Source: Callorhinchus milii (taxonomy: Eukaryota). Taken from it: a stretch of 62,655 bases of DNA. The position numbers and the translations under genes were made by a program. How positions within the stretch are numbered: the stretch's first letter is position 1; the number at the start of each line of letters is the position of its first letter. Of this stretch, positions 12,416-36,400 are shown piece after piece. Below the pieces are notes generated by a model that did no database searches, was not told where the DNA came from, and saw nothing but the letters and a program-made list of their open reading frames with translations. The stretch is taken from the NCBI RefSeq assembly GCF_018977255.1, contig NW_024705204.1, positions 1 through 62,655 on the forward strand, written 5' to 3'.

Positions 12416-12778
12416 CTGTGTAACAAATGAAACGGTGCATTTGATAACAGGGTTCAGCCACCCATAAGCCGGCCTTCACCACCACGCAATTCAACCGTCC
12501 GCTCTTAGGAACCATCTTGTCTCTCCACTGTGAATATCTGAATTTGTCTCCATTTGCCCAACTCCATCCAGCACTCGACTTCTTGTCACTGTACAGCCCA
12601 ATCCACGTGGATGTGTTTCCAACAAACAATGGAAAAGTCGCGTTATATTCCTGCTGGTTCCGAATGCTAATAAGATCTGTGCAGTGATTGCGGCAATAAG
12701 TTAGGGCATCCATCCAGTTTTTCCATCGGTCTATCCGGTAATATACTCTGTTTAGAGTTTTAATGCTTGGGTATAAAT
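12416..12778 (-). CDS. CTLD cassette exon J (last), 363 nt
   Basis: ctctctacag acceptor; DLYPSIKTLNRVYYRIDRWKNWMDALTYC...TWIGL...WRDKMVP...C...GLWVAEPC...ICYT; donor G|GTAGGA. Confidence 0.9.
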
Positions 12779-13260
12779 CTGTAGAGAGATTAGGTCAGCA
12801 TAAAGGTTTACTAGTCTCCCTTTGGCCTCTTGATTGACAACTTTAATAGTTATCGAGAAAATAGTAGGAATGTGTGTGGTGGAGCGACCACCAGCACAGA
12901 CAGCTTGAGGAAAGAGAAGGAAATTGGATCGGATAACATTGCCATCGTGCAGCACAGTCACAGCATGAGAAAAGCAGGGAGATGGGACAAACAACATAGA
13001 CTCAAAGCACGAGCGAGAATCTTTGTCATGGAGCCCACAGTGCAGAATCAGCATATTTGACCTATCGAGCCTATGGTGGTAGTCTATCCTCCGTATGACT
13101 AATATTCTTTCATCTGTACCTGTAACAATAGGAAAGATGGAACCAAGACAGGTTTCGGTGGGTGATGCGAAGTCCTGGAGCCGCTGTCAGAGGCAGACAA
13201 TCGATTGGTAAGTGATTTATTTTGGAAAACATGGATTAATCTGTCAAAGTAGCTTCTCAC

Positions 13261-13374
13261 CTGTTGCAACATTGTTCTCGGTGTTGGAAACAAATGTTTT
13301 TTCATTTGAAGGGAATTTTCCAGGTCGTCGATCACTCACTTGCAAGTTACTGGGAATGGATTGTTTCTTCAAGT
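13261..13374 (-). CDS. Stalk/linker exon, 114 nt, phase 1-1
   Basis: ttttctttccatag acceptor; DLKKQSIPSNLQVSDRRPGKFPSNEKTFVSNTENNVAT; donor GCAACAG|GTGAGAA. Confidence 0.7.
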
Positions 13375-13812
13375 CTATGGAAAGAAAATCTCTATTCACA
13401 CAATTTAATTCCTAAAATCACAAGAGATTTGAATCTTCCACTCATTGCATCTCATTTTTCCACCTTACTTACTCTACTATTTTATCATTAGAGCATCGCG
13501 TGGTTTCTGAAATGAGTCCACTGTCTAAACCAACCAGTCTTCCTGGTACCCTTTTGAGATGTAATTACCTTTTGAGGTTTAAGATATGTCTGGTGTCTGT
13601 TCTGAAAATGTTCTTCACATCCCTGAACTTACTGTCTTGAATGACTTAGCTCCCAGAGATATTTTGAAGGTTGAACAGCCCTAAAATATCCATTCATTCC
13701 TCCTAACTGCACATGACAACAACTCTCTGTAACAAGAGAACTGGGCTAGAAAGTAAAAATAGCTGTTTCTGGGAATTCCGTCCCACAATATATTCATCAT
13801 TCTCAATCTTAC

Positions 13813-14184
13813 CTGTATAGCAAACAAAACTGTATGACTGAAAGCAGTTTTCAGAAAACCACAGGCCTTTGTTGACTGCCACACAAATGAAATTAGATTG
13901 TTGATAAGCATTCTCCTGTTCCTTGTCCATCCAATGTTTGGAACTGAACTGATCTCCATTTGTCCACCTCCACCCGGCAACTGTACGGTTAACATTATGC
14001 AGCCCAATCCACAGAGGTGTATCTCCACCAGAGAGATGAAGAGTGATCTTTTGCTCTTCTGGGCTCCGAACGCTGACAAGATCCGTATAGTGAGTGCGGC
14101 AGTAATCCCAGGCAATGGTCCAGTTTTTCCGTCGGTCAATCCGATGATATTCTCTGTCCGCAGTTTTAATGCTTGGGAAATAAT
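13813..14184 (-). CDS. CTLD cassette exon I, 372 nt (missed as one ORF by the track)
   Basis: tctcttcccag acceptor; DYFPSIKTADREYHRIDRRKNWTIAWDYC...LWIGL...WMDKEQEN...C...GLWFSENC...VCYT; donor G|GTAAGA. Confidence 0.9.
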
Positions 14185-14859
14185 CTGGGAAGAGATCACA
14201 TCAAACAATCAGTTGAAGCTCCTCTGGCTCGGGTACCTCAACAAATCCATTTTGAGATCCTTTTCCTCACCTTCAAATCTTCCTTTCCTAACTATAAAAT
14301 GTCATCCAACCCTACTCTCCTGCACGCACCCAATTCACCATTGACTCTGGGCTACTGTTTTCATTGATTGATTTGATTTCTTTCTTTAGTGATCAGCCAC
14401 CAACCATTTCCTCTGGAACTCGCTTGCAAATTTTTGTTACGTTGCTCTATTTTCAACCCCCCGCCCCACTCCTCCTTCCCCCCACTCCTACCCCCCACAC
14501 CTCAAGTAGGCTGGACCAGTTACCATCTCCCATTTGGGTCAGAAGTTTGTCAGTTGGAACCTGATATTCTAGCTCAGGCGGACAATTCAGTGCAATGCTA
14601 ATAAACGCTTCATTTATCAAAGTTACCGTCCTTCAGATGATTAAACCAGGTCCGACTTTCCTGCACTTCAGTTGTTGGTAAAAATCCTGTGATACTTTTG
14701 GAAAAGAGAGATTTGCCCTTGCCAACAATTCTTCAGGAAATTGGTAATTTCATGTCTACCCGTGGGGACCTTGTTGTGCACAAATCGGCACAAACACAGT
14801 CGTCATTTTAACTGCAGATGATAGAATTACCTGCGAAGAGTTTGGAAAAGCTTTGGTCT

Positions 14860-15510
14860 CATCAGTTTTGTGACCAGGGTTCTCTCAGCCTCCTCGTCCT
14901 CCTTGACCTCTCTGCTGCTTTTGACACCGTAGACCACTCTATTCTCATCCACCGCCTCTCCTCTCATTGCAACCTCCACAGCGCTATTCTTGACTGGTTC
15001 AAATCGTACCTCTCACACGGCCTGCGCTTAATCTCCTCAAACGGCTTCTCCTCTAGCCCCCGGACCGCTTCATGTGGCGTTCCTCAGGGCTCTGTCCTTG
15101 GTCCCCTCTTCTTCAATATCTATCTGCTCACTCTTGGTGGCATCATCCGCAGATATGGAGTCAACTTCCACATGTATGTGGATGGCGCCAAACTCTACAT
15201 TTCTGCCTCAATCTTTGACTCCAGGACCCGCTGCTGTGCTGACAGAATGTCTCTCAGACATCAAGTTCTGGATGAGAGCCAACTTTCTTCAGCTGAACAA
15301 CAAAAAAACGAGGCTCTCCAGATTGACTCCCGTCAGCGCCTCCACCCTCCTCCTTGCTAAGCCAGTCCAGAACCTTGGGGTCTTGTTTGACCCTCAACTA
15401 TCCTTTCTATCCCACATCTGCGCCATGACCCGCTCTGCCTTACCCTACCTCCACAATGTCGCCCGACTACAGTTCAAGCTCCTGGTCCTTACCTTGAAGG
15501 CCCTCCACGG
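14860..15510 (+). mobile_element. Older L2 RT fragment
   Basis: [16 protein letters not shown]...[10 protein letters not shown]...FHMYVDG. Confidence 0.9.
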
Positions 15511-15519
15511 TCTTGCTCC

Positions 15520-18500
15520 AGTCGGGGAGCGGCGGCAGGACAGCGCGGGGAGGAGCCTGGGCCTACTGACCCAGGTACTTAAACTCGACGCCGGAGCGAG
15601 TTCAGCCCCGGGGGCGGGGGAGGGGGAGGTGTGGGAGCGGAGCGGAGGAACTGCTGACGTCATAGATTAGTTTTCAGGGGCGTGCGCGCGCAAAAAAAAA
15701 AAAAAAAAAAAACCTCTGCGCGCCCCCACCCTCCAGGGCTCACATCAGAGCCCACTATGGTCCTGTTGGGTTCGCTGCCCCAATCTACGGGATAATGCCA
15801 TCCACCTGACCGCTCCCGGTCCCCGCGTGCGCACTATGGCTGCCGCTTTGACCCGAGCCCCCTCACCTCCTCCCTCCTGCCCCCCTCCTCTCTCCCCCCA
15901 AACCCTCCCCTCTCTGCATCTCTCCCGCTCTCTCCTCCTCTCTCTCCGTCCCTCTCGTCTTCTATCCCCACTTGACCCTCCCACAACCTCCCTCTGCTCC
16001 AGCCTGGGAATCCTCCGCCGGGCTCACCGTAGCACTCAGCGTTGGCTGTCCAGCAGCAGCCACACCAACTGCCCCATTCCCCACTACACTCGCCAGCCAC
16101 CCCGGACACAGACCCGGGGAGTCAACCTCTCCTCCCTCATCCCCATTCCCCCCACCCCTGCCTCACAACCTGGAGCCCCCTCCCCTCCCACACACCCTTC
16201 TGTCAACCGCTCCCTCCACATCGGACTGCAAAATGTCCGCTCCCTCTGCAACAAGGCCCTGGTCATCAACGATCTCATCCTTGATGAGAACGTTGATATC
16301 ATGGCCTTAACAGAAACCTGGCTCACCCCAGGCGACACCTTCCCCCTCACGGAGGCCACACCACCCGGCTACACCTCCCACCACATCCCCCACCCCAACC
16401 GCCGTGGCGGTGGTGTTACCCTTATCTCAAGGACACCACTTGCCCTATCTCCTTACTCCTCTGGCTCTTTCCCCTCCTTTGAGCACCTCACCCTCTCCCA
16501 CCCCTCATTCCTCTCCCTTAAAATCCTCCTCCTCTACCGGCCCCTAAAACCTCTCCCACCTTCATCTCTGACATTTCAACACTCCTCACATCTCTTTGCC
16601 TCTGCTCTGATCGCCTCATCATCCTGGGCGACTTTAACCTACACTTCACCCCCTCCTGCTCCATCTCCACAGACTTCTCTTCCCTGCTCTCCTCACTCAA
16701 CCTTTCCCTACACATAAACTCCCCCACTCACAGTCACGGCCACCCACTCGATTTGGTGATCACCCGGGGCCTCAGTGTCTCGGATGTCACTATTACCGAC
16801 AAGGCCATCTCTGACCACTACTTCATCTCCTTCACCACCTCCACCCCCCTCCCCACCTCCACCAGACCCACCACCATCTTCTACCGCCCTTGGAAGAAGT
16901 TACCCCCACAATCCCTAACCGATGCCTTGGAGTCCTCTGAACTCCTCTCCCTCTGGCCTTCAACCCTCACCGACCCCTCTTCTCCTCTCTCCCTCCTCCA
17001 CAATACCCTCTCCTCCACACTCGATACTCTTGCCCCCATCACTTCCCGCACTGTCTCCTACTCCCGCTCCTCCCCCTGGTACACCACCCACCTCCGCTCA
17101 CTGAAAAGCCAGGTGCGGGCTGCTGAACGCACCTGTGTCAAATCTGGCCTAACGGTCCACCGACAAATCTGGCTGGACCTCCTCAAAATTTACCGCTCCA
17201 CTCTAGCCTCGGCCAAGTCGTCCTTCTACTCCAGGATAATCCTGGAGGCGAAGAACAACCCCAGGCTACTGTTTTCCACCATAACCCGACTCCTCCGTCC
17301 CCCCCGCCACCCCGCGCAGGTCATCTCCTCCAACCTTCACTGCGAGGAGATGCTGGATTTCCTTGAATCCAAGATCAAGGGAATCCGCTCCGCGGTCACT
17401 TCCCCTCCAACTTCCACCAACCCCCCACCCCCTCACTCCCACACTCCGACTCCTACCCATCCTCCCCTACACACCTTCGTACCCGTTTCCCCACCCTCTG
17501 TCACTGAACTCATCCTATCCCTAAAACCAACCACCTGCTCCCTTGACCCCATCCCCACTCCACTCCTTATCTCCCAGCTCCACTTTCTTGCCCCACATAT
17601 CACTGACATCATCAACCTGTCCCTCTCCTCTGGCTCTGTCCCCATTCCCTTAAAAACTGCCATCATCACGCCCACCCTGAAAAAACCCTCCCTTGATGCG
17701 TCGCAGCTATCAAGCTACCGGCCCATCTCCAACCTCCCCTTTCTCTCCAAGGTCTTGGAAAGAGTTGTCGCCTCCCAACTGCGCTCTTTCCTTTCCACCC
17801 ATTCTCTTTTCGAACCCCTTCAGTCAGGTTTCCGTGCTGCCCATAGCACAGAAACTGCCCTGGTCAAGGTCACCAATGATATCCTGACCATCTGTGACCA
17901 GGGCTCCCTCTGTCTCCTCGTCCTCCTCGACCTATCGGCAGCATTCGATACGGTCGACCACGCTATCCTACTCCACCGCTTGTCCTCCCACCTCAACCTT
18001 CAAGGCACTGTCCTTGAATGGTTTAGGTCGTACCTTTCTCACCGTCTTCACTTTGTCTCGACGAATGGCTTCTCCTCCACCCCCCGTACTGTCTCATGTG
18101 GTGTCCCTCAGGGCTCTGTCCTCGGTCCCCTCCTCTTCACCCTCTATATGCTCCCCCTTGGTGACATCATCCGCAGACATGGAGTTAACTTCCACATGTA
18201 TGCGGATGACACCCAACTCTACCTTTCCTCCTCTACTCTCAACTCCACGACCACCGATGTCCTGACAGCTGCCTGTCCGACATCGAGTCCTGGACGAGAG
18301 ACAACTTTCTTCAGCTCAACGTGCGAAAAACCGAGGCCCTCCTGATTGGCTCACGTCAGCGCCTCCGCACCTCAGGCGCTGACACCATCAGCATCCAAGG
18401 CTGCACTCTCCACCTCTCAAAGCCAGTCAGGAACCTCGGCGTTTTGTTCGACCCTGAGCTGTCCTTTCTCCCTCACATCCGCACCACAACTGGCACCGCC

Positions 18501-19277
18501 TTCCATCACCTCCGGAACATCGCCAGACTACGGCACTACCTCACCCCTCACGCTGCTGAAACCCTGGTCCACGCCTTTGTCACCTCAAGGCTGGACTATG
18601 GGAACTCTCTCCTCGCCGGCCTTCCCGGCACCTCCCTCCACAAGCTGCAGGTCATTCAGAACTCTGCAGCTCGTGTACTGTCCCGCACCAGACACCGCGA
18701 CCACATCACTCCCACCCTCGCTCGCCTCCACTGGCTCCCCATCCCCCAGAGGATTGATTTCAAGATCCTCATCCTCACCTACAAGGCCATTCACGGCCTC
18801 GCTCCCTCCTACCTCTCCAACCTACTATCCCCCTACCTACCTGCCCGTACCCTCCGTTCCTCCGGCTCCGGTCTGCTCCACGTCCCCCGCCCCAATCGCC
18901 CTACCATTGGTGGTCGGGCCTTCAGCCCCGAGGCTCTGGAACTCTATCCCCCAGTGCCTTCGCCGCTTCCTCCCTCTCCTCCTTCAAGGCCGGTCTCAAA
19001 ACCTTCCTCTTTGACTGAGCCTTCAGCTCCCCTCTCGACTCTCTTCCCCCTTCTCGCTCCCTCCCATCCCTCCCCTCACCCTGACCATTTCCCTCCTCCT
19101 CGCTCCCTCCCCTCCCCTCACCTTGACCATTTCCCTCCTCCTCGCTCCCTCCCCTCCCCTCACCTTGACCATTTCCCCCCCCGCTCGGGTCATGACCCAA
19201 CTGTGCAGCGTCTTGGGACGTCCTCCTGACGTGAAAGGCGCTTTATAAATGGAATCTTGTTGTTGTTGTTGTTGTTG
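15520..19277 (+). mobile_element. Near full-length L2-clade LINE (APE endonuclease + reverse transcriptase, frameshifted)
   Basis: GLQNVRSL...MALTETWL...GGGV (endonuclease); [17 protein letters not shown]...[38 protein letters not shown] (RT). GC-rich 5' end, (TTG)n tail at 19256-19277. Frameshifts near 16540, 18270 and 18930. Confidence 0.93.
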
Positions 19278-19545
19278 CTCTCACCTACCTCTCGGTCCTC
19301 TTAACACCCTCCGGCCCGCTTCACGTATTCTGCCTCACTCGCCCCACTATTGGCGGTGGACCTTCCGCCACTCTGCCTCCACCCTCTGGAACTCCATCCC
19401 GCAGGCCCTCCGTCTCGCCCCTCCCTCGCCACCTTCAAGACCCACCTCAAGACTCTCCTCTTTGACCGTGCTCTCGATCTTCCTGCTTCCCCCCCTGCCT
19501 TCCACCCTCGATCACAACACCAAAGATTTCACTCCCTGATCTTAC

Positions 19546-19911
19546 CTTCGTAGCAAGTGAACCAGTGTGTTTGGTTGCAGTAATCACCAAACCACAAACC
19601 ATTGCTCATAGCGACACATGTCCTGGAACCTGGGGATGTATTCATCTTCTTATCTCTCCAATGGGTGTAGTTGAACCTGTCTCCATTTACCCACTTCCAA
19701 CCATCAGCAGTTTGATTAATGTTGTACAGCCCAATCCAGAGAGGATGATCTCCATCAAAGAGCTTAGACATCAGGCTATGCTCTTCTGGGCTCCCAATAC
19801 TAATAAGATCAGTGTGATAATTTTGACAGTAATCTCGGGCTTCACTCCAGTTTTTTCGTCGGTCAACCCGATAATACTCTCTGTCTGCTGGTTTTGAGCT
19901 TCTCGACAGAT
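19546..19911 (-). CDS. CTLD cassette exon H, 366 nt, KMN at the EPN position
   Basis: ctcttttgctag acceptor; KNWSEARDYC...LWIGL...WRDKKMN...C...GLWFGDYC...TCYE; donor G|GTAAGA. Confidence 0.9.
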
Positions 19912-20447
19912 CTAGCAAAAGAGAGATACAGAAAATATTTGCAAGCTCCAACACTCCCAGGGAATCACGTTTAAGTTTCTTGTCCTTAACCCTGTGTCGT
20001 TTTGGTCAGACGGGTGTCTGAAACCGAATCAGAAACCCATTATCGTGCTTAAGATTCTCCAAACCAAGCTGAGAATTCCATGCATCCCATCTTTTCATGG
20101 AACTCCCAGAGATAGATTAATGGGACGCACACACTGTCACTCTTTCCTGGAGGGATGAAAGCTGCTTACCAAATTCCAGATAGTGATAGGCGCAGGTTGG
20201 CAAGGTCCAAGGGCTCGGGTAGTAAATGCTGGAGCCTACTCAGTTCAAGCTGCATCGCTTGCCATGGATGATCCTGTCTGGCAAGCTTACCCACTGTTTA
20301 TCCAGCCACCAGCCCCCTCCCCACCCCCCAACCCCCCGCACCCCCCCACACCTCCCACACCCAAGATTCTTCTGGTTATAGTCTATTGCTTATTTTTATT
20401 TCCACTTTCACTCCCATCCAGCTCGGCATCTTATTCCCAGATCTTAC

Positions 20448-20798
20448 CTTTGTAGCAAGTGAAAAGATAACTTTCATTGCAGTAATCACTGAACCACTGA
20501 CCATTTCTCACAGCGACACAGATCACAGAGTCCAGATAATCATTTGGCTCTTTATCTTTCCACTGCGTATAATTAAACTCGTCCCCACTTATCCATTTCC
20601 ACCCGGTAGTGGACACTTTATTATTGTACAGCCCGAGCCAGAGAGGTTCATCTCCAACAAATAGCTGAGATGTGAGCCTGTGCTCTTCCCAGCTACGAAT
20701 ACTGGTAAGACTTGTGTAATGGGTGCGGCAGTAATCCTGAGCTTCAGTCCAGTTTTTCCTTTGTTCAATCCGGTGATACTGTCTGTCCGTGGCCAGAT
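20448..20798 (-). CDS. CTLD cassette exon G, 351 nt, EPN motif
   Basis: cttttcgccag acceptor; KNWTEAQDYC...LWLGL...WKDKEPNDY...C...GQWFSDYC...TCYK; donor G|GTAAGA. Confidence 0.9.
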
Positions 20799-21994
20799 CT
20801 GGCGAAAAGTTAACAGCAGAAAATAAGGTCAAGGCTCCACTTATTTGTTTCGCCAATCCGATCAACATTGCTTGGCCTTATATTCCAATAACCTTACTGT
20901 TTCTTTTTTCACTACTTATAAAATCTCGTCCATTTTTTTCTCCTGTTCTTACAGCCCTATGCTTATAATTCTGGTCTAGTACCAGATCATCTGTATCTTA
21001 ATCCTGAGCCTTGTTGGGAGGTGCTGCCCAGCCCATCCCCCAGGCTATATCAATCTCCTTGACACATTTATCTTGAATGGAAGCAATTACAACAGCAACA
21101 ACAACTTACATTTATTTAGCACCCTTCACACACAGTAGTGTCCACTAAATAAATTCTTCATTAAACTCTTCAGATAAATTGTGTGCATCTGTATTGTTAG
21201 AAAGCCCCAACTGATTTTTGACTGAATTCAACTTTCTTCTTCTGAAACCTTCACTATTTTAAGACAAAATAACCTACCATTGCTAATTCTTGGGTCACAC
21301 TGGAATGTTCCAACTGCAATTATTAATTGTTTCCTGACTAATATATGATTAGAAACAAGGGGAGTTAAGGAGAATTGTTTTGACACAGCGAGTTGTTTGG
21401 ATCGGGAATGCACTGCCTGAAAGGGTGTTGGAAGCAATTTGGACAACTGTCAAGAGAAAAGTGGATAGATATTTGGGGAGAACAAATTTGCAAGCGTATG
21501 GGAAGAGGGCAGGGGACTGGGAATTATTTGTATAGCTCTTTCAAGAGCTGTCAAGGATACAAGGTGCCGAATGGCCTCCTTCTGTGCTGCATAATTCTAT
21601 GATTCTATGACGAACATTTGTGATTGAGAAAAAATCAGCCAGTTACAACTACTGGCTCACCGATTCTTTCCTGCTCTGCACCTGCACACATAACGTTCTA
21701 CATTTTGCTCATAAACTATGCAGACAAATTCACTTCGCATTATATTCTGTGAAGCGCTTCATGACGTCTCGAAGACGTGATAAGGCGCTATGTCAAATGC
21801 AAGTGTTGCTATTTTGCATGCAGTCCAAATGGCTAGCTTGTGATTATGTTTTGTTGTCAACAATATATTCAAGATCTTTTACTCGAAAGTATCTAAACAG
21901 CCACAGTAATGTCTATGTGTAACTGGGTCCCCATTTTTAATTTTGGAAATACTTATCGTGACTTATTGTGTATCGATATAAAGAGCCGATAGCT

Positions 21995-22745
21995 CAATCT
22001 ACACAACAACAACAACAAGGTTCCATTTATTGAGCGCCTTTCACGTCGGGAGGATGTCCCAAGGCGCTGTACAGTTGGGTCAGGACCCGAGCAGGGGGGG
22101 AAATGGTCAGGGTGAAGGGAGGGAAGGGAGGGAGCGAGGAGGGGGTAGAGAGTCGAGAGGAGAGCTGAAGGCACGGTTGAAGAGAAAGGTCTTGAGACCG
22201 GCCTTGAAGGAGGAAAGGGAGGAAGCGGCGAAGGCACTGGGGAATAGAGTTCCAGAGCCTCGGGGCTGAGATGCTGAAGGCCCGGCAACCGATGGTAGGG
22301 CGATTGGGGCGGGGGATGTGGAGCAGATCGGAGCCAGAGGAACGGAGGGTAGGTAGGGGGATAGTAGGTTGGAGAGGTAGGAGGGAGCAAGGCCGTGAAT
22401 GGCCTTGTAGGTGAGGATGAGGAACTTGAATTCGATCCTCTGGGGGATGGGGAGCCAGTGGAGGGGAGCGAGGGTGAGTGAGGGTGGGAGTGATGTGGTC
22501 CCGAAGCCTGGTGCGGGACAGTACACGAGCTGCAGAGTTCTGAATGACCTACAGTGTGGAGGGAGGTGGCGGGAAGGCCGGCGAGGAGAGAGTTCCCATA
22601 GTCCAGCCTTGAGGTGACAAAGGCGTGGACCAGGGTTTCAGCAGCGTGAGGGGTGAGGTAATGCCGTAGTCTGGCGATGTTCCGGAGGTGATGGAAGGCG
22701 GTGCCAGTTGTGGTGCGGATATGGGGGAGAAAGGACAGCTCAGGG
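21995..22745 (-). mobile_element. L2 3' fragment
   Basis: LHWLPIPQRIEFKFLILTYKAIHGLAPSYL and a (TTG)n tail. Similar L2 3' pieces at about 1-185, 10000-10200, 10590-11210, 25560-26080, 27750-28860, 39400-39790, 40420-41190, 42260-42565, 42730-42930, 52420-52895 and 62100-62310. Confidence 0.9.
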
Positions 22746-22882
22746 TCGAACAGAATAGAGTTCAGCTCTACTCATACTCAATTCAGCTGAGTAGCTCAGT
22801 CGCTTCCTTCTGTTTGGCAATTGGTGTAACTGTGGGAAAAGGCAAGTTTGCCACTCTTCAAAATCGCATGTCCTTGTCTTAC

Positions 22883-23245
22883 CTTTGTAGCAAATGAAAC
22901 GATAAGTTTGATTGCAGTAATTATCAAGCCACAGACCATTGCTCATAGTGACACAAATCACAGAAGACACAGAATCATTTGGCTCTTCTTGCCAATGGGT
23001 GTAATTGAACGTGTCTCCATTTGTCCATTTCCACCCAGCGTTCGACCCATTATTATAGTACAGCCCAATCCAAAGAGGGGTGTCGAGGTCAAGCATCTGA
23101 GATGTGAACCTGTGCTTCTCTGGATTCCGGCTGCTGACAAAATCACTGTGTTGATTGCGGCAGTAATCCCCATCTTCTGTCCAGCTTTTCTGCTTGTTGA
23201 TATGTAGGTATTCTCTGTACCAGGGCTTATCAACTTGAGACACAT
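22883..23245 (-). CDS. CTLD cassette exon F, 363 nt, EPN motif
   Basis: tttaatcag acceptor; KSWTEDGDYC...LWIGL...WQEEPNDS...C...GLWLDNYC...ICYK; donor G|GTAAGA. Confidence 0.9.
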
Positions 23246-27359: not shown

Positions 27360-27713
27360 CTTTGTAGCACATGAACCAATATGTCTGATTGCAATAATCA
27401 TCGAACCACATGCCATTGGTCACAGCCACACAGATCATGGCACCTCGGTATCCATTAGGCTCCTTTTCTTTCCAGTGTGTATAATTGAACTTGTCTCCAT
27501 TTAACCACTTCCATCCTGTTTCAGAGTGGTTACTATTATATAGCCCGATCCAAAAAGCAATGTTTCTGTCAAACATTGAAGTGAAGATCTTCTGCTCCTC
27601 TGGGTTCCGGATGCTGACCAGATCGATGTGGTGTTTGCGGCAGTAATCCCGTGCTTCAAACCATCTTTTCTTTTTGTAGATCAGGTGATACCCTCTATCT
27701 GGGGAATTCATTT
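27360..27713 (-). CDS. CTLD cassette exon C, 354 nt, EPN motif
   Basis: ctctcaccag acceptor; RWFEARDYC...FWIGL...WKEKEPNGY...C...GMWFDDYC...MCYK; donor G|GTAAGA. Confidence 0.9.
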
Positions 27714-29165
27714 CTGGTGAGAGAAGGTAACATTGGGAAGTGAGATGTCCAAATTCGACTTACACCCAGTCTCAAATAGGACTGGCTCATCAAATCCATT
27801 TAAGACCTCATCCCTCCCAGTGCACTGCATATTCTTCCAAAACTTTAGAGGGCCCATACTCTCATCTTTTCTATTCAAGATCAATCCTTCCTTCCATTGC
27901 CACCATCAACTATTCAGTTCCATGATCGTCCCATTCATAGATCCCAATCCAAGATCTTCTTCCATGCATTATAAAACATTCTGGCTCCACCTTTGAGTCC
28001 AGAACTACTTCTGTCCTGAAAGAATGTCTCTCAGACATCAAGTCCTGGATCAACTAACTTTCTTCAGTTGAACGTCAACAAGATTGGTTGGTTCCCATCA
28101 GTGCCTGATGGCATCACCATCAATGGTTGCGCATTCCACCTTAATCAGCCAGTCAAGAACCTTAGCGTCTTTTGACCTCAACTACCCTTTCTACCCTACA
28201 TTCGTGCCATGACCCGCTCTGCCTTCTCCCATTGCCCGACTCTGCCCACTCTCTCATGTAGTAGGGCACCGAAACCCCCATACACGCCTTCATAATATCC
28301 CGGCTTCACAATGCAAAAATCCTGCCTGTCGGCATCCCCAACTCCTCCATCCATAGACTTCAAATCATCCAGAACTCTGTAACTGGTGTCCTCTCCCACA
28401 CCAGGCCCTGTGACCCTATCACTCGCATCCTCGCCCCATCCCACTGGCTTCCCAACTCACACAGGATACAGTTCAAGATCCTGGTCCTTACCATCAAAGC
28501 GCTTTATGGCCTTGCTCCCCCTACCTCTGCAACCTCCTAACCCCCTACTAACCTGAGCACTCCCTCTGCTCAGCATGCTTCAGCTTTTTCACGTTCCCCA
28601 ACCTTGACCGCTCTACCATTATTGGTCGAGCCTTCAATCATTCTACCCCCGCCTTCTGGAACTGCTTCCCACAATCACTCCGCCTCGCTCCTCCCTTGCC
28701 TCTACCTTCAAGACCCATCTTAAGACCCCCCCCTCTTCGACCGTGCCTTCGATCACCCTCCTTTCCCCCCTGCCTCCCCGATCCCAACCCCCAGCTTGGG
28801 TCGAAAACATTGAATATCTAATGCCTTGGGACATCATCCTGACGTGAAATGCGCAATGCAGATGTGTTTTTGTTTTTGGTAGTTGTGGGACTTGGATTTT
28901 GGTCAATGTTTCTTCATCTTCATTGACTATTGCTTTCCAATATGACTAAGAATCTAAGAAAGGATCATTTCTCTGTGACATTAACAGGTGTGAAGTGTGC
29001 TATATAAATGCAAGTTCTTGTTCGTTATGCACGAGGGAGCGTTTGGAAATGTCTGCTATTGTTAATATGGAGGGCAAGACTGTGTCGCATTTTATAATGT
29101 CTGAAACATGTCCTTACGTTCCATGGAATAAAACAAGGTGGGATTTTTCAAATCTGGGCGAATTC

Positions 29166-29240
29166 CTGTTGCAAGAGGACTTACAGGCTTCAGAGATATT
29201 GGCAATCGCTCACTGAAAGTGGAAGAATCTTCTATGACTT
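29166..29240 (-). CDS. Possible short linker exon
   Basis: Strong acceptor ttttttccctctctcctcag; EVIEDSSTFSERLPISLKPVSPLAT ends GCAACAG like the other linkers but is followed by GA rather than GT. An internal GTAAGT (exon end 29185) would give phase 0. Confidence 0.4.
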
Positions 29241-29539
29241 CTGAGGAGAGAGGGAAAAAATAATGCCATCAATACTGATCTGATATTCTTATTAGTACAG
29301 GAAAGAAGGAAGGAAAACAGGAAAGAAAAACATTGATATGTTTTTTATCACCTTATTACATGATTGCACTTGTCACTGAAGTGATCGATGAGTAAACTCT
29401 AATAACTGCCTCTTTGACTTTGCCTATAATTATCTTCCCCTTTCTCGCTCCCCTCTCTATTTTCCCTGACTCCCTCATTCTGAAGGAAGGTAAATAAATG
29501 CAAGTTGATGTTGCTGTGATAATTTGGAATTGAATGCAT

Positions 29540-29696
29540 ATATCTAATGTACGAATCTGTGCTTCTCCGGGCTCCTAATGCTTATAATATTTGTATAATA
29601 ACTGACAATATATATATATATTGACTTCAGCCCAGTTGTTCCTGAGATTAATCCGGTGATATTCTCTGGCCATGGATTCAGTTCTCTTGAGACCAT
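29540..29696 (-). pseudogene. 5' half of a CTLD pseudo-exon
   Basis: ttttttgacag acceptor; DGLKRTESMAREYHRINLRNNWAEV, an (AT)n run, YC, then frameshifted TNIISIRSPEKHRF; remainder missing. Left boundary approximate. Confidence 0.7.
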
Positions 29697-29818
29697 CTGT
29701 CAAAAAACGATTGCATATGAAATAGATTCAAATCTCAATGCCTCCCAGCACAGCAGCAGCTGGAGTTTAAGATCTGTGGCAATGCAGCGATTCGCTGTCC
29801 TGAGAAATAAGTCCATAC

Positions 29819-29932
29819 CTTCTATGGAATTATTTTGAGTGATTGTAAGATCCAAAATTGTGTGTTGATTTTTTTCTGTAGGTCGTGGCGAGGAAGGTGT
29901 TGGTTCACGGGCAATTGCAGATTCACGAAGTT
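29819..29932 (-). CDS. Pro/Ser/Thr-rich stalk exon, 114 nt, phase 1-1
   Basis: ttttctttgtctctccacag acceptor; ELRESAIAREPTPSSPRPTEKNQHTILDLTITQNNSIE; donor G|GTATGG. Confidence 0.7.
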
Positions 29933-30252
29933 CTGTGGAGAGACAAAGAAAATAACATATTTTATTGCTGATTTGTCAATCTGTTTGGTTTATAACCTGC
30001 TGTCTATCAAACTCTCACATTCTACATGCTTAAGATATGAACAGAATCCCAGAAACAGGACGGTGATGGACTAACGATTGGCATTCCACCTGAAAACAGC
30101 AGATGAACCATGTCTCTTGTTGTGACTCCAACATATACTCAATTATTTCACTGAATTGGATATGCCATTATAATTAACTTATCTAATTTGTTTTATGAAG
30201 ACAGCCTGCTGTTTTTGCAAAGGTATTGCGGAGAAGGGGAGAGAATAAAAAA

Positions 30253-30337
30253 GGAAGGAAGGAAGAAAGGAAGGAAGGAAGGAAGGAAGGAAGGAAGGAA
30301 GGAAGGAAGGAAGGAAGGAAGGAAGGAAGGAAGGAAA
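30253..30337 (+). repeat. (GGAA)n microsatellite
   Basis: Direct reading. Confidence 0.97.
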
Positions 30338-30589
30338 GAAATTTCTTCTGGAGTTCTCTGATAAAATCACGTACCCTTGCTTTATCTCTTCTTGTCTTCC
30401 AAATGATGCCATAAACCTGTCTGTTAGACTGTGCTTTTGGTTTGTATAATTGATGACCCTAGCTCTTGACTGCTCTCCGTAAGATCTGCAAAATGCTTTG
30501 AGAAACCCAGACTACAATAATGGCGCAATACATTTGTTGGTTAGTACAAATTGGGTGGAGATTTGTAACTATTACAATTTGTAATTGTA

Positions 30590-30917
30590 ATAATAATAGT
30601 AAAAATAATCCTTGCATTTGGTATAGCGCTTTTCACGTCGGGAGGACGTCCCAAAGTGCTTTACAGAACACACTGTAAAGCGAATTGACTGTATATTTGT
30701 GGGCGAACGCGGCAGCCAATTGCACACAGCAATGTCCCACAAACAGTAGATTGAAAATGACCAATTTATTATTGTTCTTTTTTGTTTTGGAGGGATTATT
30801 ATTAGGCTCTGTGTGGAGTAAGGAAACTTGCCCAAGGTTTCGCCCTCCGCCTGGGATTGAACTCGGGTCTCTCACTTGCAAAGCGAGTGCTCTAACCACT
30901 GAGCTACAGGACTCCAT
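30590..30917 (-). mobile_element. tRNA-derived SINE
   Basis: TAGCTCAGTGGTTAGAGC...GAGTTCAATCC head and (AAT)n tail. Confidence 0.9.
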
Positions 30918-31439
30918 TGTAATTATTAAGGGCCACTTAATGATTTATGGATTATGAAAAATAAGTTCTTGCCCTCCTCAGAATTGATTTTAGAGATGGG
31001 AAGCTGTAAAGGAGTACTTGGCATTTCTTCTGTTTTAAAAAGGATTCTGGGCTGTATCAATGTCAGTGTTAGCTCACTAGGAGTTGAAGATTTCTGAATG
31101 TCTGTCGAGACAGATGAAACATCACACCCATTGTATTTGACCTAATTCGATTTGTTTTATCAATTATTTCATAATACTAAACTTTCAGTTGCTATGTCGA
31201 CTCACGTTCAATGTTAAAAGATGGAAATCATAGCCACAAGTGAATGTGGAGGATACAATCTGCAAATTGTAATGGCTGTCTATTTTGTGGACTAAGTACG
31301 GCAACCAATCGCACACAGCAGTGTCCCACAAACAGTCGCGGAGTGAGTGAGTGACCAAATTATACATTTTTTGGAGGATGGTAATTTGAGAGGAACGAAG
31401 TAAAGTGTTTCATCTTTGCTCACAGAATCTCTGCTAAAT

Positions 31440-31757
31440 TGGACGAGATGCCAACAGACTCAGCTGTATAGACAACACAGATTAGGGCCCTGAGGTAATC
31501 ATTGGGCTCCATAAATTTCCAGTTTGTTTAATTGACCTTGTCGAAATTTGTTCACATCCAATGTTGATTGGATCGCTTATGATTGTACATCCCGATCCAG
31601 AGAGGCGTAGATCTGTCAATCAGCTCAGATATAAACTTGTTCTCCTCTGTGTCCCAAATACTAAGATCATGTAATCGCAACAGCAGAATTACAGTGCTCG
31701 AGTCCAGTTTATCTTTTGGTGGATGCTCTATCATTTGTTTACTTATCAAAGGCTCAT
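31440..31757 (-). pseudogene. CTLD pseudo-exon (frameshift, stops, 3' end lost)
   Basis: LWIGMYNHKRSNQHWM*TNFDKVN*TNWKFMEPNDYLRALICVV; acceptor atcag present, no donor seen. Left boundary approximate. Confidence 0.8.
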
Positions 31758-32087
31758 CTGATAATAAATCACATCAGAAAATAAGTTCAAGCTCCAGTTG
31801 TTTGAGTTGTTCAAGGCAGATCCAATCTAAGATCCTTACCAGCAAATTCCTTCTCAGAATTTATCGATATAAATTCTGCCTGCTCTAATCTGTAACTTTA
31901 TCTCTATCTTAAAATATTTCTGTTCAAATAGTATACCTCTTGGATAAAGGTTGCTATTGTTAATATTGAAGCGAACCCTATGTTTTAAATAAGTGTGTTT
32001 GAAATAAGTAATGTGAAAATACATCCGTATTTTATGATGCTCAAAAGAGCAGCGCAAAATCATGCTCAACTCTCTTCCCGATCTTAC

Positions 32088-32451
32088 CTTTCTGGCCCAT
32101 GAACTTGTATGTTTGATTGCGGAAATCATCAAACCACAGCCCATTGTGCACAGCCACACACATTGGAGAACTTAGGTTATCATTTGGTACCATAAATTTC
32201 TAGTGTGTATTATTTATTTGTTCTCCAGTTGTCTACATCCAGTTGGCTTTGGAGCCCTTTTTTATTGCAGAGCCCAATCCAGAAAGGCAAATATTTGTCA
32301 AACTTCTTGGAAATAAATCCGTCCTCATAGTTCTGAATGCTGATCAGATTTGTGTAGTGGATGCGGCAATAAATCAGGGCTTCAGTCCAGTTTTTCTCTT
32401 GATCAATCAGGTAACATATCCTGGTTACTGACTTATTCTTCACTGCAGGAT
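32088..32451 (-). pseudogene. CTLD pseudo-exon (frameshift, two Trp-to-stop changes) with intact AG/GT
   Basis: 364 nt. KNWTEALIYC...FWIGL, then a +1 frameshift, TAG at both W positions, VPND...CVAVHNGLWFDD, last two Cys lost; donor G|GTAAGA retained. Confidence 0.85.
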
Positions 32452-32839
32452 CTGATGAGAATCCATGAGACAAAGAGTCAGACTTCAGTGGAATTTGAGT
32501 AGATGTGAATCAGGTATAAGATACCTCTCCTTATTTCAAAACTTCAAACCCTATCCAATTTGACCACTCCCTTTCCCATGCAATATTCTGATTTTAATTT
32601 CAAACCCATCCCCTTCACTTTTCTGCTGTTGTCTTCTGCATGATGCTCACTTTGTCTTCCCACTCGCAGTGACACCTCCCTGGGCCATTAGGTCCTTATC
32701 CAATTGAACCATCCCAACAGTTTATTTTCCTTCATGCCCAACAAATTTGTCAGTTAAAGATTTTCTGCAAATAATGGGCTAATTCATCACTTGGGAATAC
32801 GTTGTTAGCTGATTCTGGGTTATTTTGAGAGTTGAAAAG

Positions 32840-32938
32840 TTTAAAAGTTGTGACGAGATCTTTCTTTGTTGCAATACCGTTTATATGGATTTGGGAGCTT
32901 GCCTGATGGTTCGCTGGGAGTTGCAGATATACGAAAGT
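32840..32938 (-). pseudogene. Decayed stalk exon with mutated acceptor (AG to AA)
   Basis: ACTTTCGTATATCTGCAACTCCCAGCGAACCATCA aligns with the start of the 29932 stalk exon (AACTTCGTGAATCTGCAATTGCCCGTGAACCAACA), but the acceptor reads cacAA. Left boundary approximate. Confidence 0.55.
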
Positions 32939-33160
32939 TTGTGAAAACAGACAGAACAAAATGCGTTCTTATTCGGTTGGGTATGCAACCAGGTTCTTCA
33001 ATTGGGTAATCCAGGATGCATATTTACTGTACCGAAGGGTGGAGGTGAATCAGATTCTGACTTCAATGATGGAGGTAAGTATTCTTCCCATTCAGCTGGG
33101 GGGTGGGGGGTCGCAGGTGAACCAAGTAGAAAATTGATAACTCTGGACAGAAGTTCTCAC

Positions 33161-33268
33161 CTGTTGCCAAATTAGTGTTATTCAGAGCTATGCCTGAAGC
33201 TTTTTCTATTGTGGAACAGATTGAGGCTTCTAAAGAGATCTGGCTGGAGAGTAAAGATTTCTTCTCAT
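33161..33268 (-). CDS. Stalk/linker exon, 108 nt, phase 1-1
   Basis: tctccacag acceptor; DEKKSLLSSQISLEASICSTIEKASGIALNNTNLAT; donor GCAACAG|GTGAGAA, identical to the donor of the 13.3 kb linker. Confidence 0.7.
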
Positions 33269-33666
33269 CTGTGGAGACACAGCCCGTACCATTATTTGCC
33301 TGGCGGTTTGCTTGGTATACTGTGCAGAGAGCGGGAGATGAAAAGAGAGACAAAGTGCGAAAGAAAAAGACGGTGATAATTCATCAGACCCATTGATCTG
33401 GATTTGTCCGCTAAATTCTCCTTCCCTTGTTATCTCAGTCTCTCCTTTTCTTCAAAGCCCTCTTAGAAAATTGCATTTTCCATCCTGTTTAGGTTTTCAC
33501 AATTGAATATCACTTTTATCATGTCTGCTTTCATTAACACCTATTGAAGGTTTCCAGATGCTCATCCCGTGTGAGAGGAATTATATTGGTCCAAGCATTT
33601 GGTATCATTGACAGACACAAATGAAGAGGTTGACATCGCACAGTGATTCGCTGGCACTGGTCTTAC

Positions 33667-33786
33667 CTGCTGGACTTCGTAACAGGGGATTCTTCCAAGC
33701 TGTGAGTGAAACTTTTTTGGATGGAAGCTTTGCAGGTCGTGGAGACCTGAACGTTGGATTCATAGGAGGGGAAAATCTCCGAAGGT
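33667..33786 (-). CDS. Pro/Ser/Thr-rich stalk exon, 120 nt, phase 1-1
   Basis: tttctttctgtctccatag acceptor; DLRRFSPPMNPTFRSPRPAKLPSKKVSLTAWKNPLLRSPA; donor G|GTAAGA. Confidence 0.7.
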
Positions 33787-34334
33787 CTATGGAGACAGAA
33801 AGAAATTGATATGCCGTATTGTTCAGCTGACATTCTGCTTGCTACACTTAAATTAAGCTCCACCTATTATATTACACGGGCTTTGTACTGTTTGTGAGAA
33901 AGATGAAGTGATAATCAAGTGACTCCTCTTAAGGTATTTATGTTTATGGGCAACACTTATTCGAAAGATGTCTTGTTTTTGTGAGATCTACCAAAGATTC
34001 AATAATTTCAGTTAGTTCCATACCTCACTGTGATCAACATATCTACTTATTTTGATGAAGGAAGGAAGCAAGCAAGAAAGCAGGCAGGCAGGCAAGCAAG
34101 CAATTCTATCCAGGCATCCAATCTAGCAACCATCAGGACCATTTACTTTCGACTTCTCTTCTCGGATTTCAATTGGAAAAAGTATTTTGGAGGAGTGAAA
34201 TAAATGGTTTGGAGTCAACCTCTGCAAATTGAGATTGGAGTATTCAGCTCGATTGAAAGAGTCAGCCACAGGATGGCCTCCTCCTGTCCTGCAAGGAAGC
34301 ACATAAAGCTGACCATTCCACTGCCTGAACTTAC

Positions 34335-34700
34335 CTTTGTAGCACATAGACTGGTATGTTTTATTGCAGTAGTCATCAAACCACAAGCCATTGATCACAG
34401 CGACACAGCTTTCAGAGTTAAGGTAATCATTTGGCTCCATATATTTCCACTGCGTATAATTGACCGCTTCTCCATTTGTCCACTTCCACGCGGCAGTGGA
34501 ACCCTTTTTACTGAACAGCCCGATCCAGAGAGTGCGATCTTCAACAATCAGCTGAGACATGTACTTGGCCTCCTCTGGACTCTGGATACTGACCAGATCT
34601 ACGTAGTGACTGCGGCAGTGATCCCGAGCTTCAGTCCAGTTTTTCAGTTGCTTGATTGGGTAATATTCTCTGTCCACAAATTTATTCTTCAAGGCCAAAA
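34335..34700 (-). CDS. CTLD cassette exon B, 366 nt, EPN motif
   Basis: ctag acceptor; KNWTEARDHC...LWIGL...WKYMEPNDY...C...GLWFDDYC...MCYK; donor G|GTAAGT. Confidence 0.9.
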
Positions 34701-36028
34701 CTAGATAGAAACCATCACATCAGCGAACATTATAGATTCAAGATTCATTATTGTTAAACACTGAAGGCATAACCTTCACATAACTTTACAATAATAATCC
34801 CTCCAAAAAACAAAACAATAATAAATTGGTCATTTTCAATCCACGACTGTCTGTGCGACACTGCTGTGCGCAATTGGCTGCCGCGTTCGCCCACAAATAT
34901 ACAGTCAATTCACTTTAAAGTATATTCTGTGAAGCGCTTTGGGATGTCTAGAAGACGTGAAAAGTGCTATATCAAATGCAAGGATTATTATTTTTATTAA
35001 TATCACTCCTTCCTACCTCAGTAAAATTGTCTTGCTTTGTTTTCGTACAATCACCTTTATGTAAGCTATTGCTCATTCTTCTGCCCTATCATTTTTGGCC
35101 AGACTTTTGGCCACCATTTCCCTATCTAATGGAAGTACGGTACTTCCAAATCGCTCAACCTTGCTGCCTCCATTTTCACCCAACCCCCATTTGAAAGTTA
35201 TCTCCCTTAATTCAGCTTTTCTTCAATAGCATTAAATCTTTCACCCAAAGTGCTGTACAAGTGCAATTTGTTATCCATTAAACTTCAGATGACCATTTGG
35301 GCAATGGCACAAACAGAGAGAACTGACAAATGTAAAAAATATTTGTCAAAAACAGCAGCAAAAACACCTAAGGAAGTAACATCTGTACATTGCCCCATAC
35401 TGAAAAGTGTTACATTGATGAATCAATGAATGAAGACATGGAGATATGTAACCTGCTGAGGAAATCTTTGAAAAGTTGGAGTATTTCAAAGCTGTAATTT
35501 GAGTGTTTTCTGATACAGAAAGGTGTATGAGCTGTGAAGACTTGTTGGTGGTCGAAGCATTTTGAAGATCTGTGAAGGTAAAAGGAGTAAAACAGCTTTA
35601 ATGATAACAATCCTTGCATTTTATGTAGTGCCCTCTCATGACAATGAGACGACTCAAAGTGCTTCAAAGTATAGTATGCTGTAACATCAATTGGCTGTAT
35701 ATTTTGTGGGCGAAACTCAGCAGCCAATTACACACAGAAGTGTCTCACAAACAGTTGTGAATCAAGTGACCAATATTTGGGGTGAAAGAGTTATTACCCC
35801 CGGAAAACGATCTACCAATTATCTAACGATAGGTTCCTGGCTGCTGGTAGGTAAACCGAGACGTGTGGAGAAAGGAAACTTGTCCAAAAGTTCACCTTGT
35901 CCAGGTGTTCTCATTGCAAGGTGAGTGCTCAAACCACTAAGCTACGGGACGCAATAATGGATATTCAGTTAAGGCTACAAGGACTCTATCAAGATCCCAA
36001 TCCAAGAAATTGTATGTGTCAATCTTAC

Positions 36029-36400
36029 CTTCATAGCAAATGAACAAATGTGTTTGATTGCAGTAAGCGGGAAACCACAGTCCATTGTTTATAGCCACAC
36101 AGATCCCAGAAGTTCGGTTACCATTCATCTTTTTATCTTTCCAGTGCATATGATTGAATGCATCGCCATTGGTCCATTGCCATTGCCATCCAACAGTGGT
36201 TAAATTTTTACTGTACAGCCCAATCCAATACGATACTCCATAATTGAGCAGACGGGCGGTTTCATAATTTTCCTTTGGGCTCCGGATGCTGACAAGATCC
36301 GTGTGGTGAGCGCGGCAGTAACCCCGGGCTTTTGCCCATTTTTTCTTTTCATTGACCGTGTGATACTTTCTGTCCAAGGATGGAACAATCTGGGGCAGAG
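36029..36400 (-). CDS. CTLD cassette exon A (first after leader), 372 nt, phase 1-1
   Basis: ttttccag acceptor; WAKARGYC...YWIGL...WKDKKMN...C...GLWFPAYC...FICYE; donor G|GTAAGA. Confidence 0.9.

Follow-up and report, generated by a model that had tools for sequence, protein, structure and literature searches.

The 62,655-nt stretch of Callorhinchus milii DNA analysed here (contig NW_024705204.1; hereafter, the window) contains, at about positions 36963-6763 on the minus strand, one predicted secreted gene encoding multiple C-type lectin-like domains (CTLDs). Its repeat body had been described, in an earlier reading of the letters, as a series of cassettes in which the ligand-binding loop is hypervariable. 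We find that excess loop variability is confined to cassette types lacking the EPN and WFD motifs, a pattern that, as judged from sequence, suggests relaxed constraint. The reading to which we incline, with modest confidence, is that the gene would encode a secreted, heavily glycosylated, multivalent protein in which a minority of conserved EPN...WFD(D) sites is combined with a majority of abandoned, drifting ones. This two-regime pattern is the most useful new point to emerge from the analysis, and it makes a testable prediction as to which cassettes are functional lectins.

Calcium-site motifs of the ten cassettes

From 12.4 to 36.4 kb, the minus strand carries a series of CTLD segments, which a six-frame scan for WIGL-type motifs revealed. 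Splice-site analysis resolved ten intact cassettes, each a single phase 1-1 exon of 351-372 nt, with limits exactly those given in the original prediction (36400-12416); all ten match the Lectin_C profile (PF00059) at 57.4-74.9 bits, against a cutoff of 22.6. From the 5′ end of the gene, and with the triplets at the EPN and WND positions in parentheses, these are C1 at 36400-36029 (KMN, WFP; 60 bits), C2 at 34700-34335 (EPN, WFD; 70.8 bits), C3 at 27713-27360 (EPN, WFD; 74.9 bits), C4 at 25115-24750 (ELN, WFN), C5 at 24218-23859 (EPD, WLN; loop two residues shorter), C6 at 23245-22883 (EPN, WLD), C7 at 20798-20448 (EPN, WFS), C8 at 19911-19546 (KMN, WFG), C9 at 14184-13813 (EQE, WFS; loop two residues longer) and C10 at 12778-12416 (KMV, WVA), the most divergent cassette and one with an extra Cys. 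Loop length is canonical in seven of the ten. Both lists of triplets reproduce the earlier ones letter for letter, and a profile alignment with CTLD4 and CTLD5 of macaque MRC1 (EPN-x5-E-x-C ... WND-x2-C) validated the motif columns, which match those of MRC1 CTLD4. The conserved framework was likewise described correctly: the four Cys (C28, C98, C111 and C119), W58, G60, L61, W71 and W73 are invariant across the ten cassettes, and of the WIGL and W-x-W residues only the Ile varies, being kept in 9 of 10.

In MBP-A, the selectins and mannose receptor CTLD4, the ligand positions of Ca2+ site 2 are Glu, Asn, Glu, Asn and Asp. C2 keeps four of these five residues, C3, C4 and C6 keep three, C5 and C7 two, C9 one or two, C1 and C8 one, and C10 none. 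EPN itself is present in C2, C3, C6 and C7 and EPD in C5, the remaining cassettes carrying the other motifs listed above. The second Glu, at the position two residues before the third Cys (C-2), occurs only in C2 and C4, its place being taken in the other cassettes by G, M, S, V, V, R, F and L, and the Asp of WND occurs only in C2, C3 and C6, with Asn in C4 and C5 and P, S, G, S and A in the remainder. The Asn of WND is absent from all ten cassettes, always in favor of a hydrophobic residue, as had been noted (F in seven, L in two and V in one). Canonical Ca2+ site 2 is complete in none of the cassettes, and the sites are non-canonical; in this respect the earlier interpretation is supported. 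Because the WND Asn is absent throughout, the cassettes fail the definition of a canonical Ca2+-dependent carbohydrate-recognition domain of the MBP-A or MRC1 CTLD4 type. C2, which reads EPN-DYLNS-E-S-C ... WFDDYC, departs from the MRC1 CTLD4/5 pattern solely by the change of Asn to Phe.

Other features of the domain were observed alongside these motifs. In WxDxxC, the third residue after the Trp is D, E or N in nine of ten cassettes and varies less than the residue at the Asp position. Sequons of the form N-x-T/S lie in loop L1 of C1, C3, C4, C8 and C9, and a C-N-Q-T sequon follows the third Cys in seven cassettes; glycans may crowd the canonical binding face.

Two regimes of divergence between paralogous arrays

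When three joined cassettes were used as a query, C. milii proteins ranked at the top of the search. Ensembl/UniProt models that contain the exact window cassettes are P0132 (C1-C3, of which C1 was matched exactly to part of the model), P0122 (C4-C6, C4 likewise) and P0128 (C5-C7). At least two other paralogous arrays exist in C. milii, and the models taken from these were XP_007910097.1 (P0125), XP_007910316.1 (P0121), P0123, P0124, P0126, P0127 and P0130, the chimeric Ensembl domains P0124_110, P0139_16 and P0142_103 being excluded from the paralogue set. The C. milii paralogues correspond cassette for cassette, with 66-86% identity outside the loop, and in a tree that included every domain, eight cassettes of the window pair with their other-array counterparts at 100% bootstrap; no positional paralogue of C6 was recovered in this tree. 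These eight positional classes imply that the cassette types are older than the duplication of the whole array, and since the cassettes diverged before that duplication, most of the loop diversity between cassettes represents old divergence. The sole accelerated cassette in the window is C1, whose branch is about five times as long as that of its array-B paralogue (0.345 versus 0.067) and in which WFD has become WFP.

Pooled amino-acid changes per opportunity within positional classes amount to 0.20 overall, 0.28 in the loop, 0.28 in alpha-2 and 0.36 in the linker, and site rates from a 29-domain alignment agree with these counts. The loop value conceals two different behaviors. In the classes with EPN and WFD (C2, C3, and the psiA-type and X-type cassettes, counted from the sister arrays, the only place where they are intact), the loop and WxDxxC segment together change at 0.088, versus 0.177 for the rest of the domain (odds ratio 0.45, p = 0.017), and the C3 loop retains 92-100% identity across all three arrays. 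In the other classes (C1, C4, C5, C7, C8 and C10), the relation is reversed, with 0.34 for the loop and WxDxxC versus 0.19 for the rest of the domain (odds ratio 2.2, p < 1e-4). The two groups are alike in the rest of the domain, in the linker (0.36 and 0.36), in alpha-2 and in L1. The loops of the degenerate classes change about three times as fast as those of the types with EPN and WFD, at 0.39, compared with a near-neutral 0.36 for the linkers, and a loop that changes at the linker rate is what would be expected from relaxed constraint, rather than from selection for change. The earlier assertion of hypervariability can thus be retained for the loops of cassette types without EPN/WFD, which are indeed fast between arrays, and not for the EPN+WFD loops, which are conserved.

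The mechanism that we propose distinguishes two kinds of site. The first kind comprises C2, C3, possibly C6, and two types of which the sister arrays alone have intact copies, all of which keep EPN plus WFD(D). Such a site may still be working, either as a weakened four-ligand Ca2+/sugar site or as one in which the Phe plugs the cavity or stacks. The second kind, comprising C1, C4, C5, C7, C8, C10 and probably C9, has lost the EPN/WFD residues and has a loop that drifts at the linker rate, which would reflect a relaxed constraint like that presumed for the CTLDs of the mannose-receptor family that do not bind sugar; these cassettes might serve as spacers, or bind non-glycan ligands via other surfaces. 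C7 is placed with the second kind because its site, despite reading EPN, appears from its paralogues (VPG and EPT) to belong to the degenerate type. The psiA, psiB and psiC/X-type cassettes are dead in the window and intact in the two sister arrays. As two of these dead cassettes are of the conserved EPN/WFD-site types, this copy of the array has lost half of its putatively functional site types.

An inherited replacement of Asn by Phe

Among 40 domains of the C. milii arrays, 33 carry F after the Trp of the WND position, four carry L, two V and one E, and none carries Asn. Asn is also missing from this position in all 76 elasmobranch array domains, where K, L, H, S, M or F takes its place, and otophysan arrays mostly have T, F or Y. 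Since the cassettes are paralogues, the loss of Asn from all ten reflects inheritance and not ten independent events. The codon for Phe is under purifying selection (beta 0.3, below alpha; p = 0.045), and the change of Asn to Phe (or Leu or Val) is an inherited, family-level signature maintained by selection. The C-2 position, that of the second Glu, is hydrophobic as well in about half of the C. milii domains, and these side chains may together sit in the vacated metal site and stabilize the loop in place of Ca2+.

The anatomy of the gene, its motif states, the patterns of selection and the paralogy are shown by the analysis, and from them we infer the type of ligand, the Ca2+ dependence and the structural role of the Phe and of the hydrophobic residue at C-2. 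An alternative that we judge unlikely is that no cassette binds sugar. On this view the Phe, together with the hydrophobic residue in place of the second Glu, would simply fill the cavity left by the metal, so that the loop folds in its absence, the conservation of EPN and WFD would be structural, and all ligands would be proteins or other non-glycans. The universal loss of the Asn ligand and the restriction of the second Glu to C2 and C4 and of the Asp to C2, C3 and C6 all agree with such a plug, as does the C-2 position, at which 15 of 29 C. milii domains have V, M, L or F, and the auxiliary-site positions of loop L1, when aligned with MBP-A, are N, S or K and not acidic. The majority of CTLDs in MRC1, LY75 and PLA2R, too, do not act as lectins, which we count in favor of this explanation. 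An AlphaFold2 (AF2) model of C2 has the CTLD fold (predicted local distance difference test, pLDDT, 73.5; predicted template modelling score, pTM, 0.70), and a Foldseek search with it returned Endo180 CTLD2, SRCL and CD23 at TM scores of 0.75-0.77, with Ly49, CLEC-2 and the Ca2+-independent type II antifreeze protein of the longsnout poacher (2zib) also among the best structural matches. Like 2zib, the bivalve lectins SPL-1/2 and the CTLDs of natural killer cell receptors combine the CTLD fold with a replaced metal site; the resemblance to the cassettes is one of principle only. SPL-2 provides an example of sugar binding by aromatic stacking without Ca2+ (PMC12842671).

Three observations argue against the absence of sugar binding from every cassette. 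C2 retains four of the five ligands at canonical spacing; the entire loop, and not EPN alone, is conserved in the EPN+WFD classes, which a structural role would not obviously require; and lectins with the same motif pair as C2 and C3 are on record, including SsCTL4 of rockfish (EPN/WFD; PMC11084180) and CgCLec-2 of oyster (EPN/WFD) and CfLec-2 of scallop (EPD/WFD; PMC12842671). These are reported to bind lipopolysaccharide or peptidoglycan (LPS/PGN) or mannose, two of them in a Ca2+-dependent manner (PMC11084180; PMC12842671), in assays that are weak (200 mM inhibitor). They differ from the cassettes in belonging to unrelated lineages, in being mostly single domains and in having weak affinities, and the likeness is one of motif and of CTLD superfamily. 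Some ligands may be proteins, as suggested in the original prediction.

Selection among the cassettes of the window

The ten cassettes are 37-59% identical to each other, and their synonymous sites are saturated (mean proportion of synonymous differences, pS, 0.61; 3.4 synonymous substitutions per codon over the tree). Per-partition codon fits in IQ-TREE with free branch lengths gave implausible tree lengths of 13-20 substitutions per codon and unstable values of omega (dN/dS), and were replaced by our own implementation of the GY94/F3x4 model, in which branch lengths and the synonymous rate are shared across the gene. With this model, rough estimates of omega are 0.45 for the gene, 0.75 for the EPN loop, 0.72 for alpha-2, 0.90 for the linker, 0.60 for L1 and 0.39 for W-x-D-x-x-C. 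The value for the EPN loop exceeds the gene mean (twice the log-likelihood difference, 2ΔlnL, 13.3) and is below 1 (2ΔlnL 4.5). The proportions of nonsynonymous differences (pN) are similarly 0.44 in the EPN loop, 0.45 in the inter-domain linker and 0.41 in alpha-2, and by neither measure is the loop uniquely variable. Purifying selection is significant on 20 codons. A site-by-site test found no codon of EPN, W-x-D or any other part of the loop with beta greater than alpha at p < 0.1. Within the W-x-D motif, variability is highest at the Asp (beta 1.7 versus alpha 0.3, p = 0.12).

These estimates bear on a second alternative, in which the loops are under diversifying selection and the ten cassettes form a germline-encoded, immune-type panel of specificities. 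We consider this quite unlikely. It would accommodate the birth and death of cassettes in three array copies, the position of the locus beside T-cell-receptor V segments (described below), and the finding that loops of six cassette classes change 2.7 times as fast as the rest of the domain between arrays. A site-model test, which had been proposed as the check on loop diversification, also gives it partial encouragement, since model M2a is preferred over M1a (2ΔlnL 8.8-10.6, p = 0.005-0.012), with 5-7% of sites at an omega of 2.6-3.4. However, the sites assigned with confidence to this class of omega near 3 are two positions in alpha-2 and the free middle residue of the N-x-T sequon in L1, all of them outside EPN and WND. 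Moreover, no loop codon stands out in the site-by-site test, the omega of the loop is less than 1, the fast loops are no faster than the linkers, as relaxed constraint predicts, and the best-preserved sites have the most conserved loops. Finally, the preference for M2a is fragile under synonymous saturation, which makes it weak evidence.

Several points nevertheless weigh against a combination of conserved and merely drifting sites. Because M2a does outperform M1a, there may, on this weak evidence, be some positive selection, and within the loop EPN+2 and the position of the second Glu (C-2) have posteriors of 0.5-0.6 for the class of omega near 3. Saturation of synonymous sites makes all of the omega values rough. 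The comparison between arrays uses amino acids only, from predicted and in some cases chimeric models, with two or three sequences per class. Grouping the classes by motif retention is partly circular, a concern that is mitigated by dropping the six motif columns, after which the EPN+WFD classes still change at 0.115 versus 0.351 for the other classes (p = 2e-4). The long-loop region of the AF2 model is of low confidence (pLDDT 52-65), and the Phe side chain therefore cannot be placed from it. The connectivity of the exons, in turn, is inferred from splice signals and paralogue models.

A family of secreted CTLD arrays in cartilaginous and other fishes

Secreted CTLD arrays of chondrichthyans and fishes, which databases list as 'MRC1-like' and 'MRC2-like', make up an unstudied family to which the gene belongs. 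It has the features by which we delimit this family: a signal peptide, tandem single-exon CTLDs and no other domain, and a residue other than Asn in WxD. Beyond C. milii, the nearest relatives are pure-CTLD arrays of about 30% identity, and per-domain profile scores fall from 147-161 bits in C. milii to 127 in Heptranchias and about 105 in other elasmobranchs. The elasmobranch arrays, annotated as 'macrophage mannose receptor 1-like' (Scyliorhinus P0004/P0012, Pristis P0003 and Heptranchias P0017/P0243), likewise consist of a signal peptide and tandem CTLDs. Together with the C. milii paralogues, they share with the gene short or Ser/Thr/Pro linkers, PF00059 as the only domain, the lack of an anchor, the N-terminal framework REYH.I...KNWTEARDYC..YTDL.SI and the lack of Asn after the Trp of WxD. 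The elasmobranch arrays differ in that EPN is wholly lost (YPM, YPR, HPY) and in that K, L, H and S are commoner than F after the Trp. Literature searches turned up nothing that deals specifically with this family in sharks or chimaeras, the literature searched held no experimental study of the C. milii paralogues or of the elasmobranch arrays, and the gene is not among the proteins listed in a paper on the shark skin-mucus proteome.

A similar architecture is that of the mannose-receptor family (MRC1, MRC2/Endo180, PLA2R1 and LY75/DEC-205), whose members have 8-10 tandem CTLDs, mostly without sugar-binding residues, compared with ten intact and three decayed CTLDs in the gene. The best sequence matches in the Protein Data Bank come from this family (for LY75, 151 bits across several domains), and so does the best match in fold, that to Endo180 CTLD2 (TM 0.75). 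Unlike its members, the gene lacks a ricin-type Cys-rich domain, a fibronectin type II domain, a transmembrane segment and a cytoplasmic tail; each of its CTLDs is encoded by one exon, and their per-domain similarity to the family is no higher than to L-selectin (54 bits). The closest relatives of the gene carry PF00059 alone, whereas true MRC1 matches include PF00040 and PF00652 and score far lower. Orthology to the mannose receptor is ruled out, as three of four defining features (the ricin domain, the fibronectin type II domain and the anchor) are absent, and the database name 'mannose receptor-like' reflects a resemblance at the level of architecture and not orthology. The likeness to selectins does not extend beyond the lectin domain, encoded by one exon, and the YTDLVSI and W-x-D-D motifs. 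Selectin identity was also ruled out, since Pfam finds only Lectin_C and selectins require one lectin domain together with epidermal growth factor (EGF) and sushi repeats and a membrane anchor.

Two annotated isoforms of the homologue in the catshark Scyliorhinus canicula, P0004 and P0012, differ by precisely one CTLD cassette of 118 aa, which is consistent with exon skipping of the kind permitted by symmetrical phase 1-1 cassettes. Such skippable cassettes form part of a more ambitious proposal, which we regard as very doubtful, that EPN plus W-F-D constitutes a distinct, selectively maintained binding chemistry of a vertebrate lectin family, with Phe in place of the Asn ligand and serving either as a platform for aromatic contacts or as a plug without metal. 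The gene would then encode a modular recognition protein in which cassettes with conserved sites supply fixed specificity, while degenerate loops explore new, possibly protein, ligands. If such a chemistry did exist, the position of the gene beside T-cell-receptor V segments in a basal jawed vertebrate could exceed coincidence.

Structure of the gene

Joined together, the ten cassette exons form an open frame over 1210 residues. They are preceded by polypyrimidine/AG acceptors and followed by the donor G/GTAAG (the slash marks the exon boundary), or G/GTAGG in the case of C10, and the C1-C2 junction is the same as in the Ensembl model P0132. The exons that do not encode lectin domains were located by tblastn with the N-termini, linkers and tails of paralogues (e.g. 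P0125, P0126, P0138 and P0121); like the cassettes, all lie on the minus strand. No long prokaryote-type open reading frame (ORF) was found in the window, and the one N that it contains, at position 3614, was kept as is. The resulting spliced model is 1439 aa long, contains 42 Cys and 30 N-x-S/T sequons, and matches Lectin_C at 525 bits in ten stretches; a Pfam search of the model found no domain besides these. The signal peptide is its sole hydrophobic segment, with no other hydrophobic 19-mer, and the tail exons, which have a counterpart in the paralogue XP_007910316.1, are hydrophilic and end in a stop. With no anchor, the product would be a secreted protein and not a membrane receptor.

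The signal-peptide exon (MSKMRVFLPLLLLTQ; 36963-36918), found with the N-termini of P0125, P0126 and P0138, ends in the phase 1 donor G/GTGAG, and splicing across an intron of 517 nt joins it to C1 as ...LLLTQ-A-LPQIVPSLDRKYH. Downstream of C2 lies a Ser/Pro-rich linker exon (DLRRFSPPMNPTFRSPRPAKLPSKKVSLTAWKNPLLRSPA; 33786-33667) of phase 1-1, with AG and GTAAG splice signals and 56% identity to the P0125 linker. It is followed by a decayed linker exon with a frameshift and stops (32945-32801), which the P0126 linker matched by tblastn in two pieces, each in its own frame, and by psiA (32509-32044), detected as hmmsearch pieces and by tblastn against P0126_208, in which there are a frameshift and in-frame stops, two Cys are gone and EPN has become VPN. 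Next is psiB (31773-31423), with a diverged N-terminal half and two in-frame stops, which is 73% identical to the intact P0126_330 over 64 aa. A linker-like exon (DIQKSSTPSELTLT...; 31102-30974) is of uncertain use, having GC in place of GT, and is 81% identical to the P0126 tail/linker. The linker exon at 29932-29819 (ELRESAIAREPTPSSPRPTEKNQ...), of phase 1-1, is present in the predicted model P0144. After psiC (29727-29520), in which only part of the N-terminal half of an 'X-type' cassette is left, frameshifted and interrupted by a stop, another phase 1-1 linker exon (EVIEDSSTFSERLPISLKPVSPLATG...; 29240-29118) joins C3 through the junction ...MEQ/MNSPDRGYH, as in P0144. A profile built from the cassettes detected no further copy in the window apart from the decayed psiA, psiB and psiC.

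Between C9 and C10 there is a linker exon (DLKKQSIPSNLQVSDRRPGKFPSNEKTFVSNTENNVAT; 13374-13261), also of phase 1-1, with 63% identity to the linker of XP_007910316.1 (P0121). The protein ends with tail exon 1 (G-CAQLSQKELAPIEAVKSQVKANQK; 7789-7716), which is 59% identical to the P0121 tail and is bounded by splice signals, and tail exon 2 (ANPKGHVANPKLRMNMDYQEASSQNTPKRTN, then a stop; 6858-6763), identified by tblastn and splice signals. The fifth Cys of C10 lies in NHCTDL, and the tail starts G-C-AQL with another unpaired Cys; these two residues could form an extra disulfide or an intermolecular link.

It is highly improbable that the whole array is a decaying pseudogene whose motif changes reflect neutral decay: three cassettes and one linker exon are clearly dead and the C1 branch is five times that of its paralogue, but in ten cassettes the frame is open, all four Cys and both splice sites are intact and the phase is symmetrical, the gene-wide omega and the 20 purifying codons indicate constraint, and it is the dead cassettes that display the local pattern of decay, with stops, frameshifts and loss of Cys.

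Neighboring elements of the window

The intron between C8 and C9 holds the remains of a long interspersed nuclear element (LINE) on the plus strand (14200-19500, also 14812-15357), with endonuclease and reverse transcriptase segments (Exo_endo_phos_2; RVT_1, 108.6 and 57.7 bits). This LINE, which is C-rich on the plus strand and does not contribute to the gene product, accounts for the GC-rich block and the GC-skew anomaly of -0.53 at 14.2-19.5 kb; the same block was considered as a mucin exon, which is ruled out by the LINE on the opposite strand.

Immunoglobulin V-set exons ending in ...YYCAL or YFCAL are found at 44670-45038 and 48016-48468 on the plus strand and at 61512-61856 on the minus strand, and weaker copies at 49610-50101, 54202-54489 and 56578-56862 on the plus strand. 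Two V-set exons are followed by a recombination signal that consists of CACAGTG, a 23-bp spacer and ACAAAAACC or ACACAAACT. The exons are T-cell-receptor (alpha/delta-type) V segments, some of them decayed, directly upstream of the lectin gene. Downstream of the gene, an open segment of 206 residues (2187-2804, minus strand; 7tm_1, 38.8 bits) is of the rhodopsin type with seven transmembrane segments, and is a G-protein-coupled receptor gene or fragment.

Two repeats were also observed. At 8868-9746, a near-perfect tandem array contains 40 copies of the 22-bp unit GGGAACTACCGGCCAGTCAGCC at 95% match, and this array gives rise to spurious ORFs of 300-370 aa in three frames. At 830-1454, the low-complexity repeat CCTCCCC(T)GGC precedes its own reverse complement, GAGCCAGGGGAGGGGG, and the two form an inverted simple-repeat pair within a stretch of 59% GC.

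Implications

An uncharacterised family of cartilaginous fishes, automatically misnamed, thereby receives a proper description, in which the C. milii gene encodes a secreted ten-CTLD protein and not a mannose receptor. Departures from the canonical motifs are usual among CTLDs, and EPN/WFD lectins have already been described; the two-regime pattern is what is new here. The analysis also carries a caution, that diversity among old paralogous domains should not be read as hypervariability, and the gene looks like that of an ordinary lineage-specific lectin family and not like a hypervariable receptor. If the EPN/WFD site is functional, the family would constitute a natural experiment on a C-type lectin site without the WND asparagine, and would show how such a site works, a question that isolated accounts of fish and invertebrate lectins with WFD, WSD or WHD leave unsettled.

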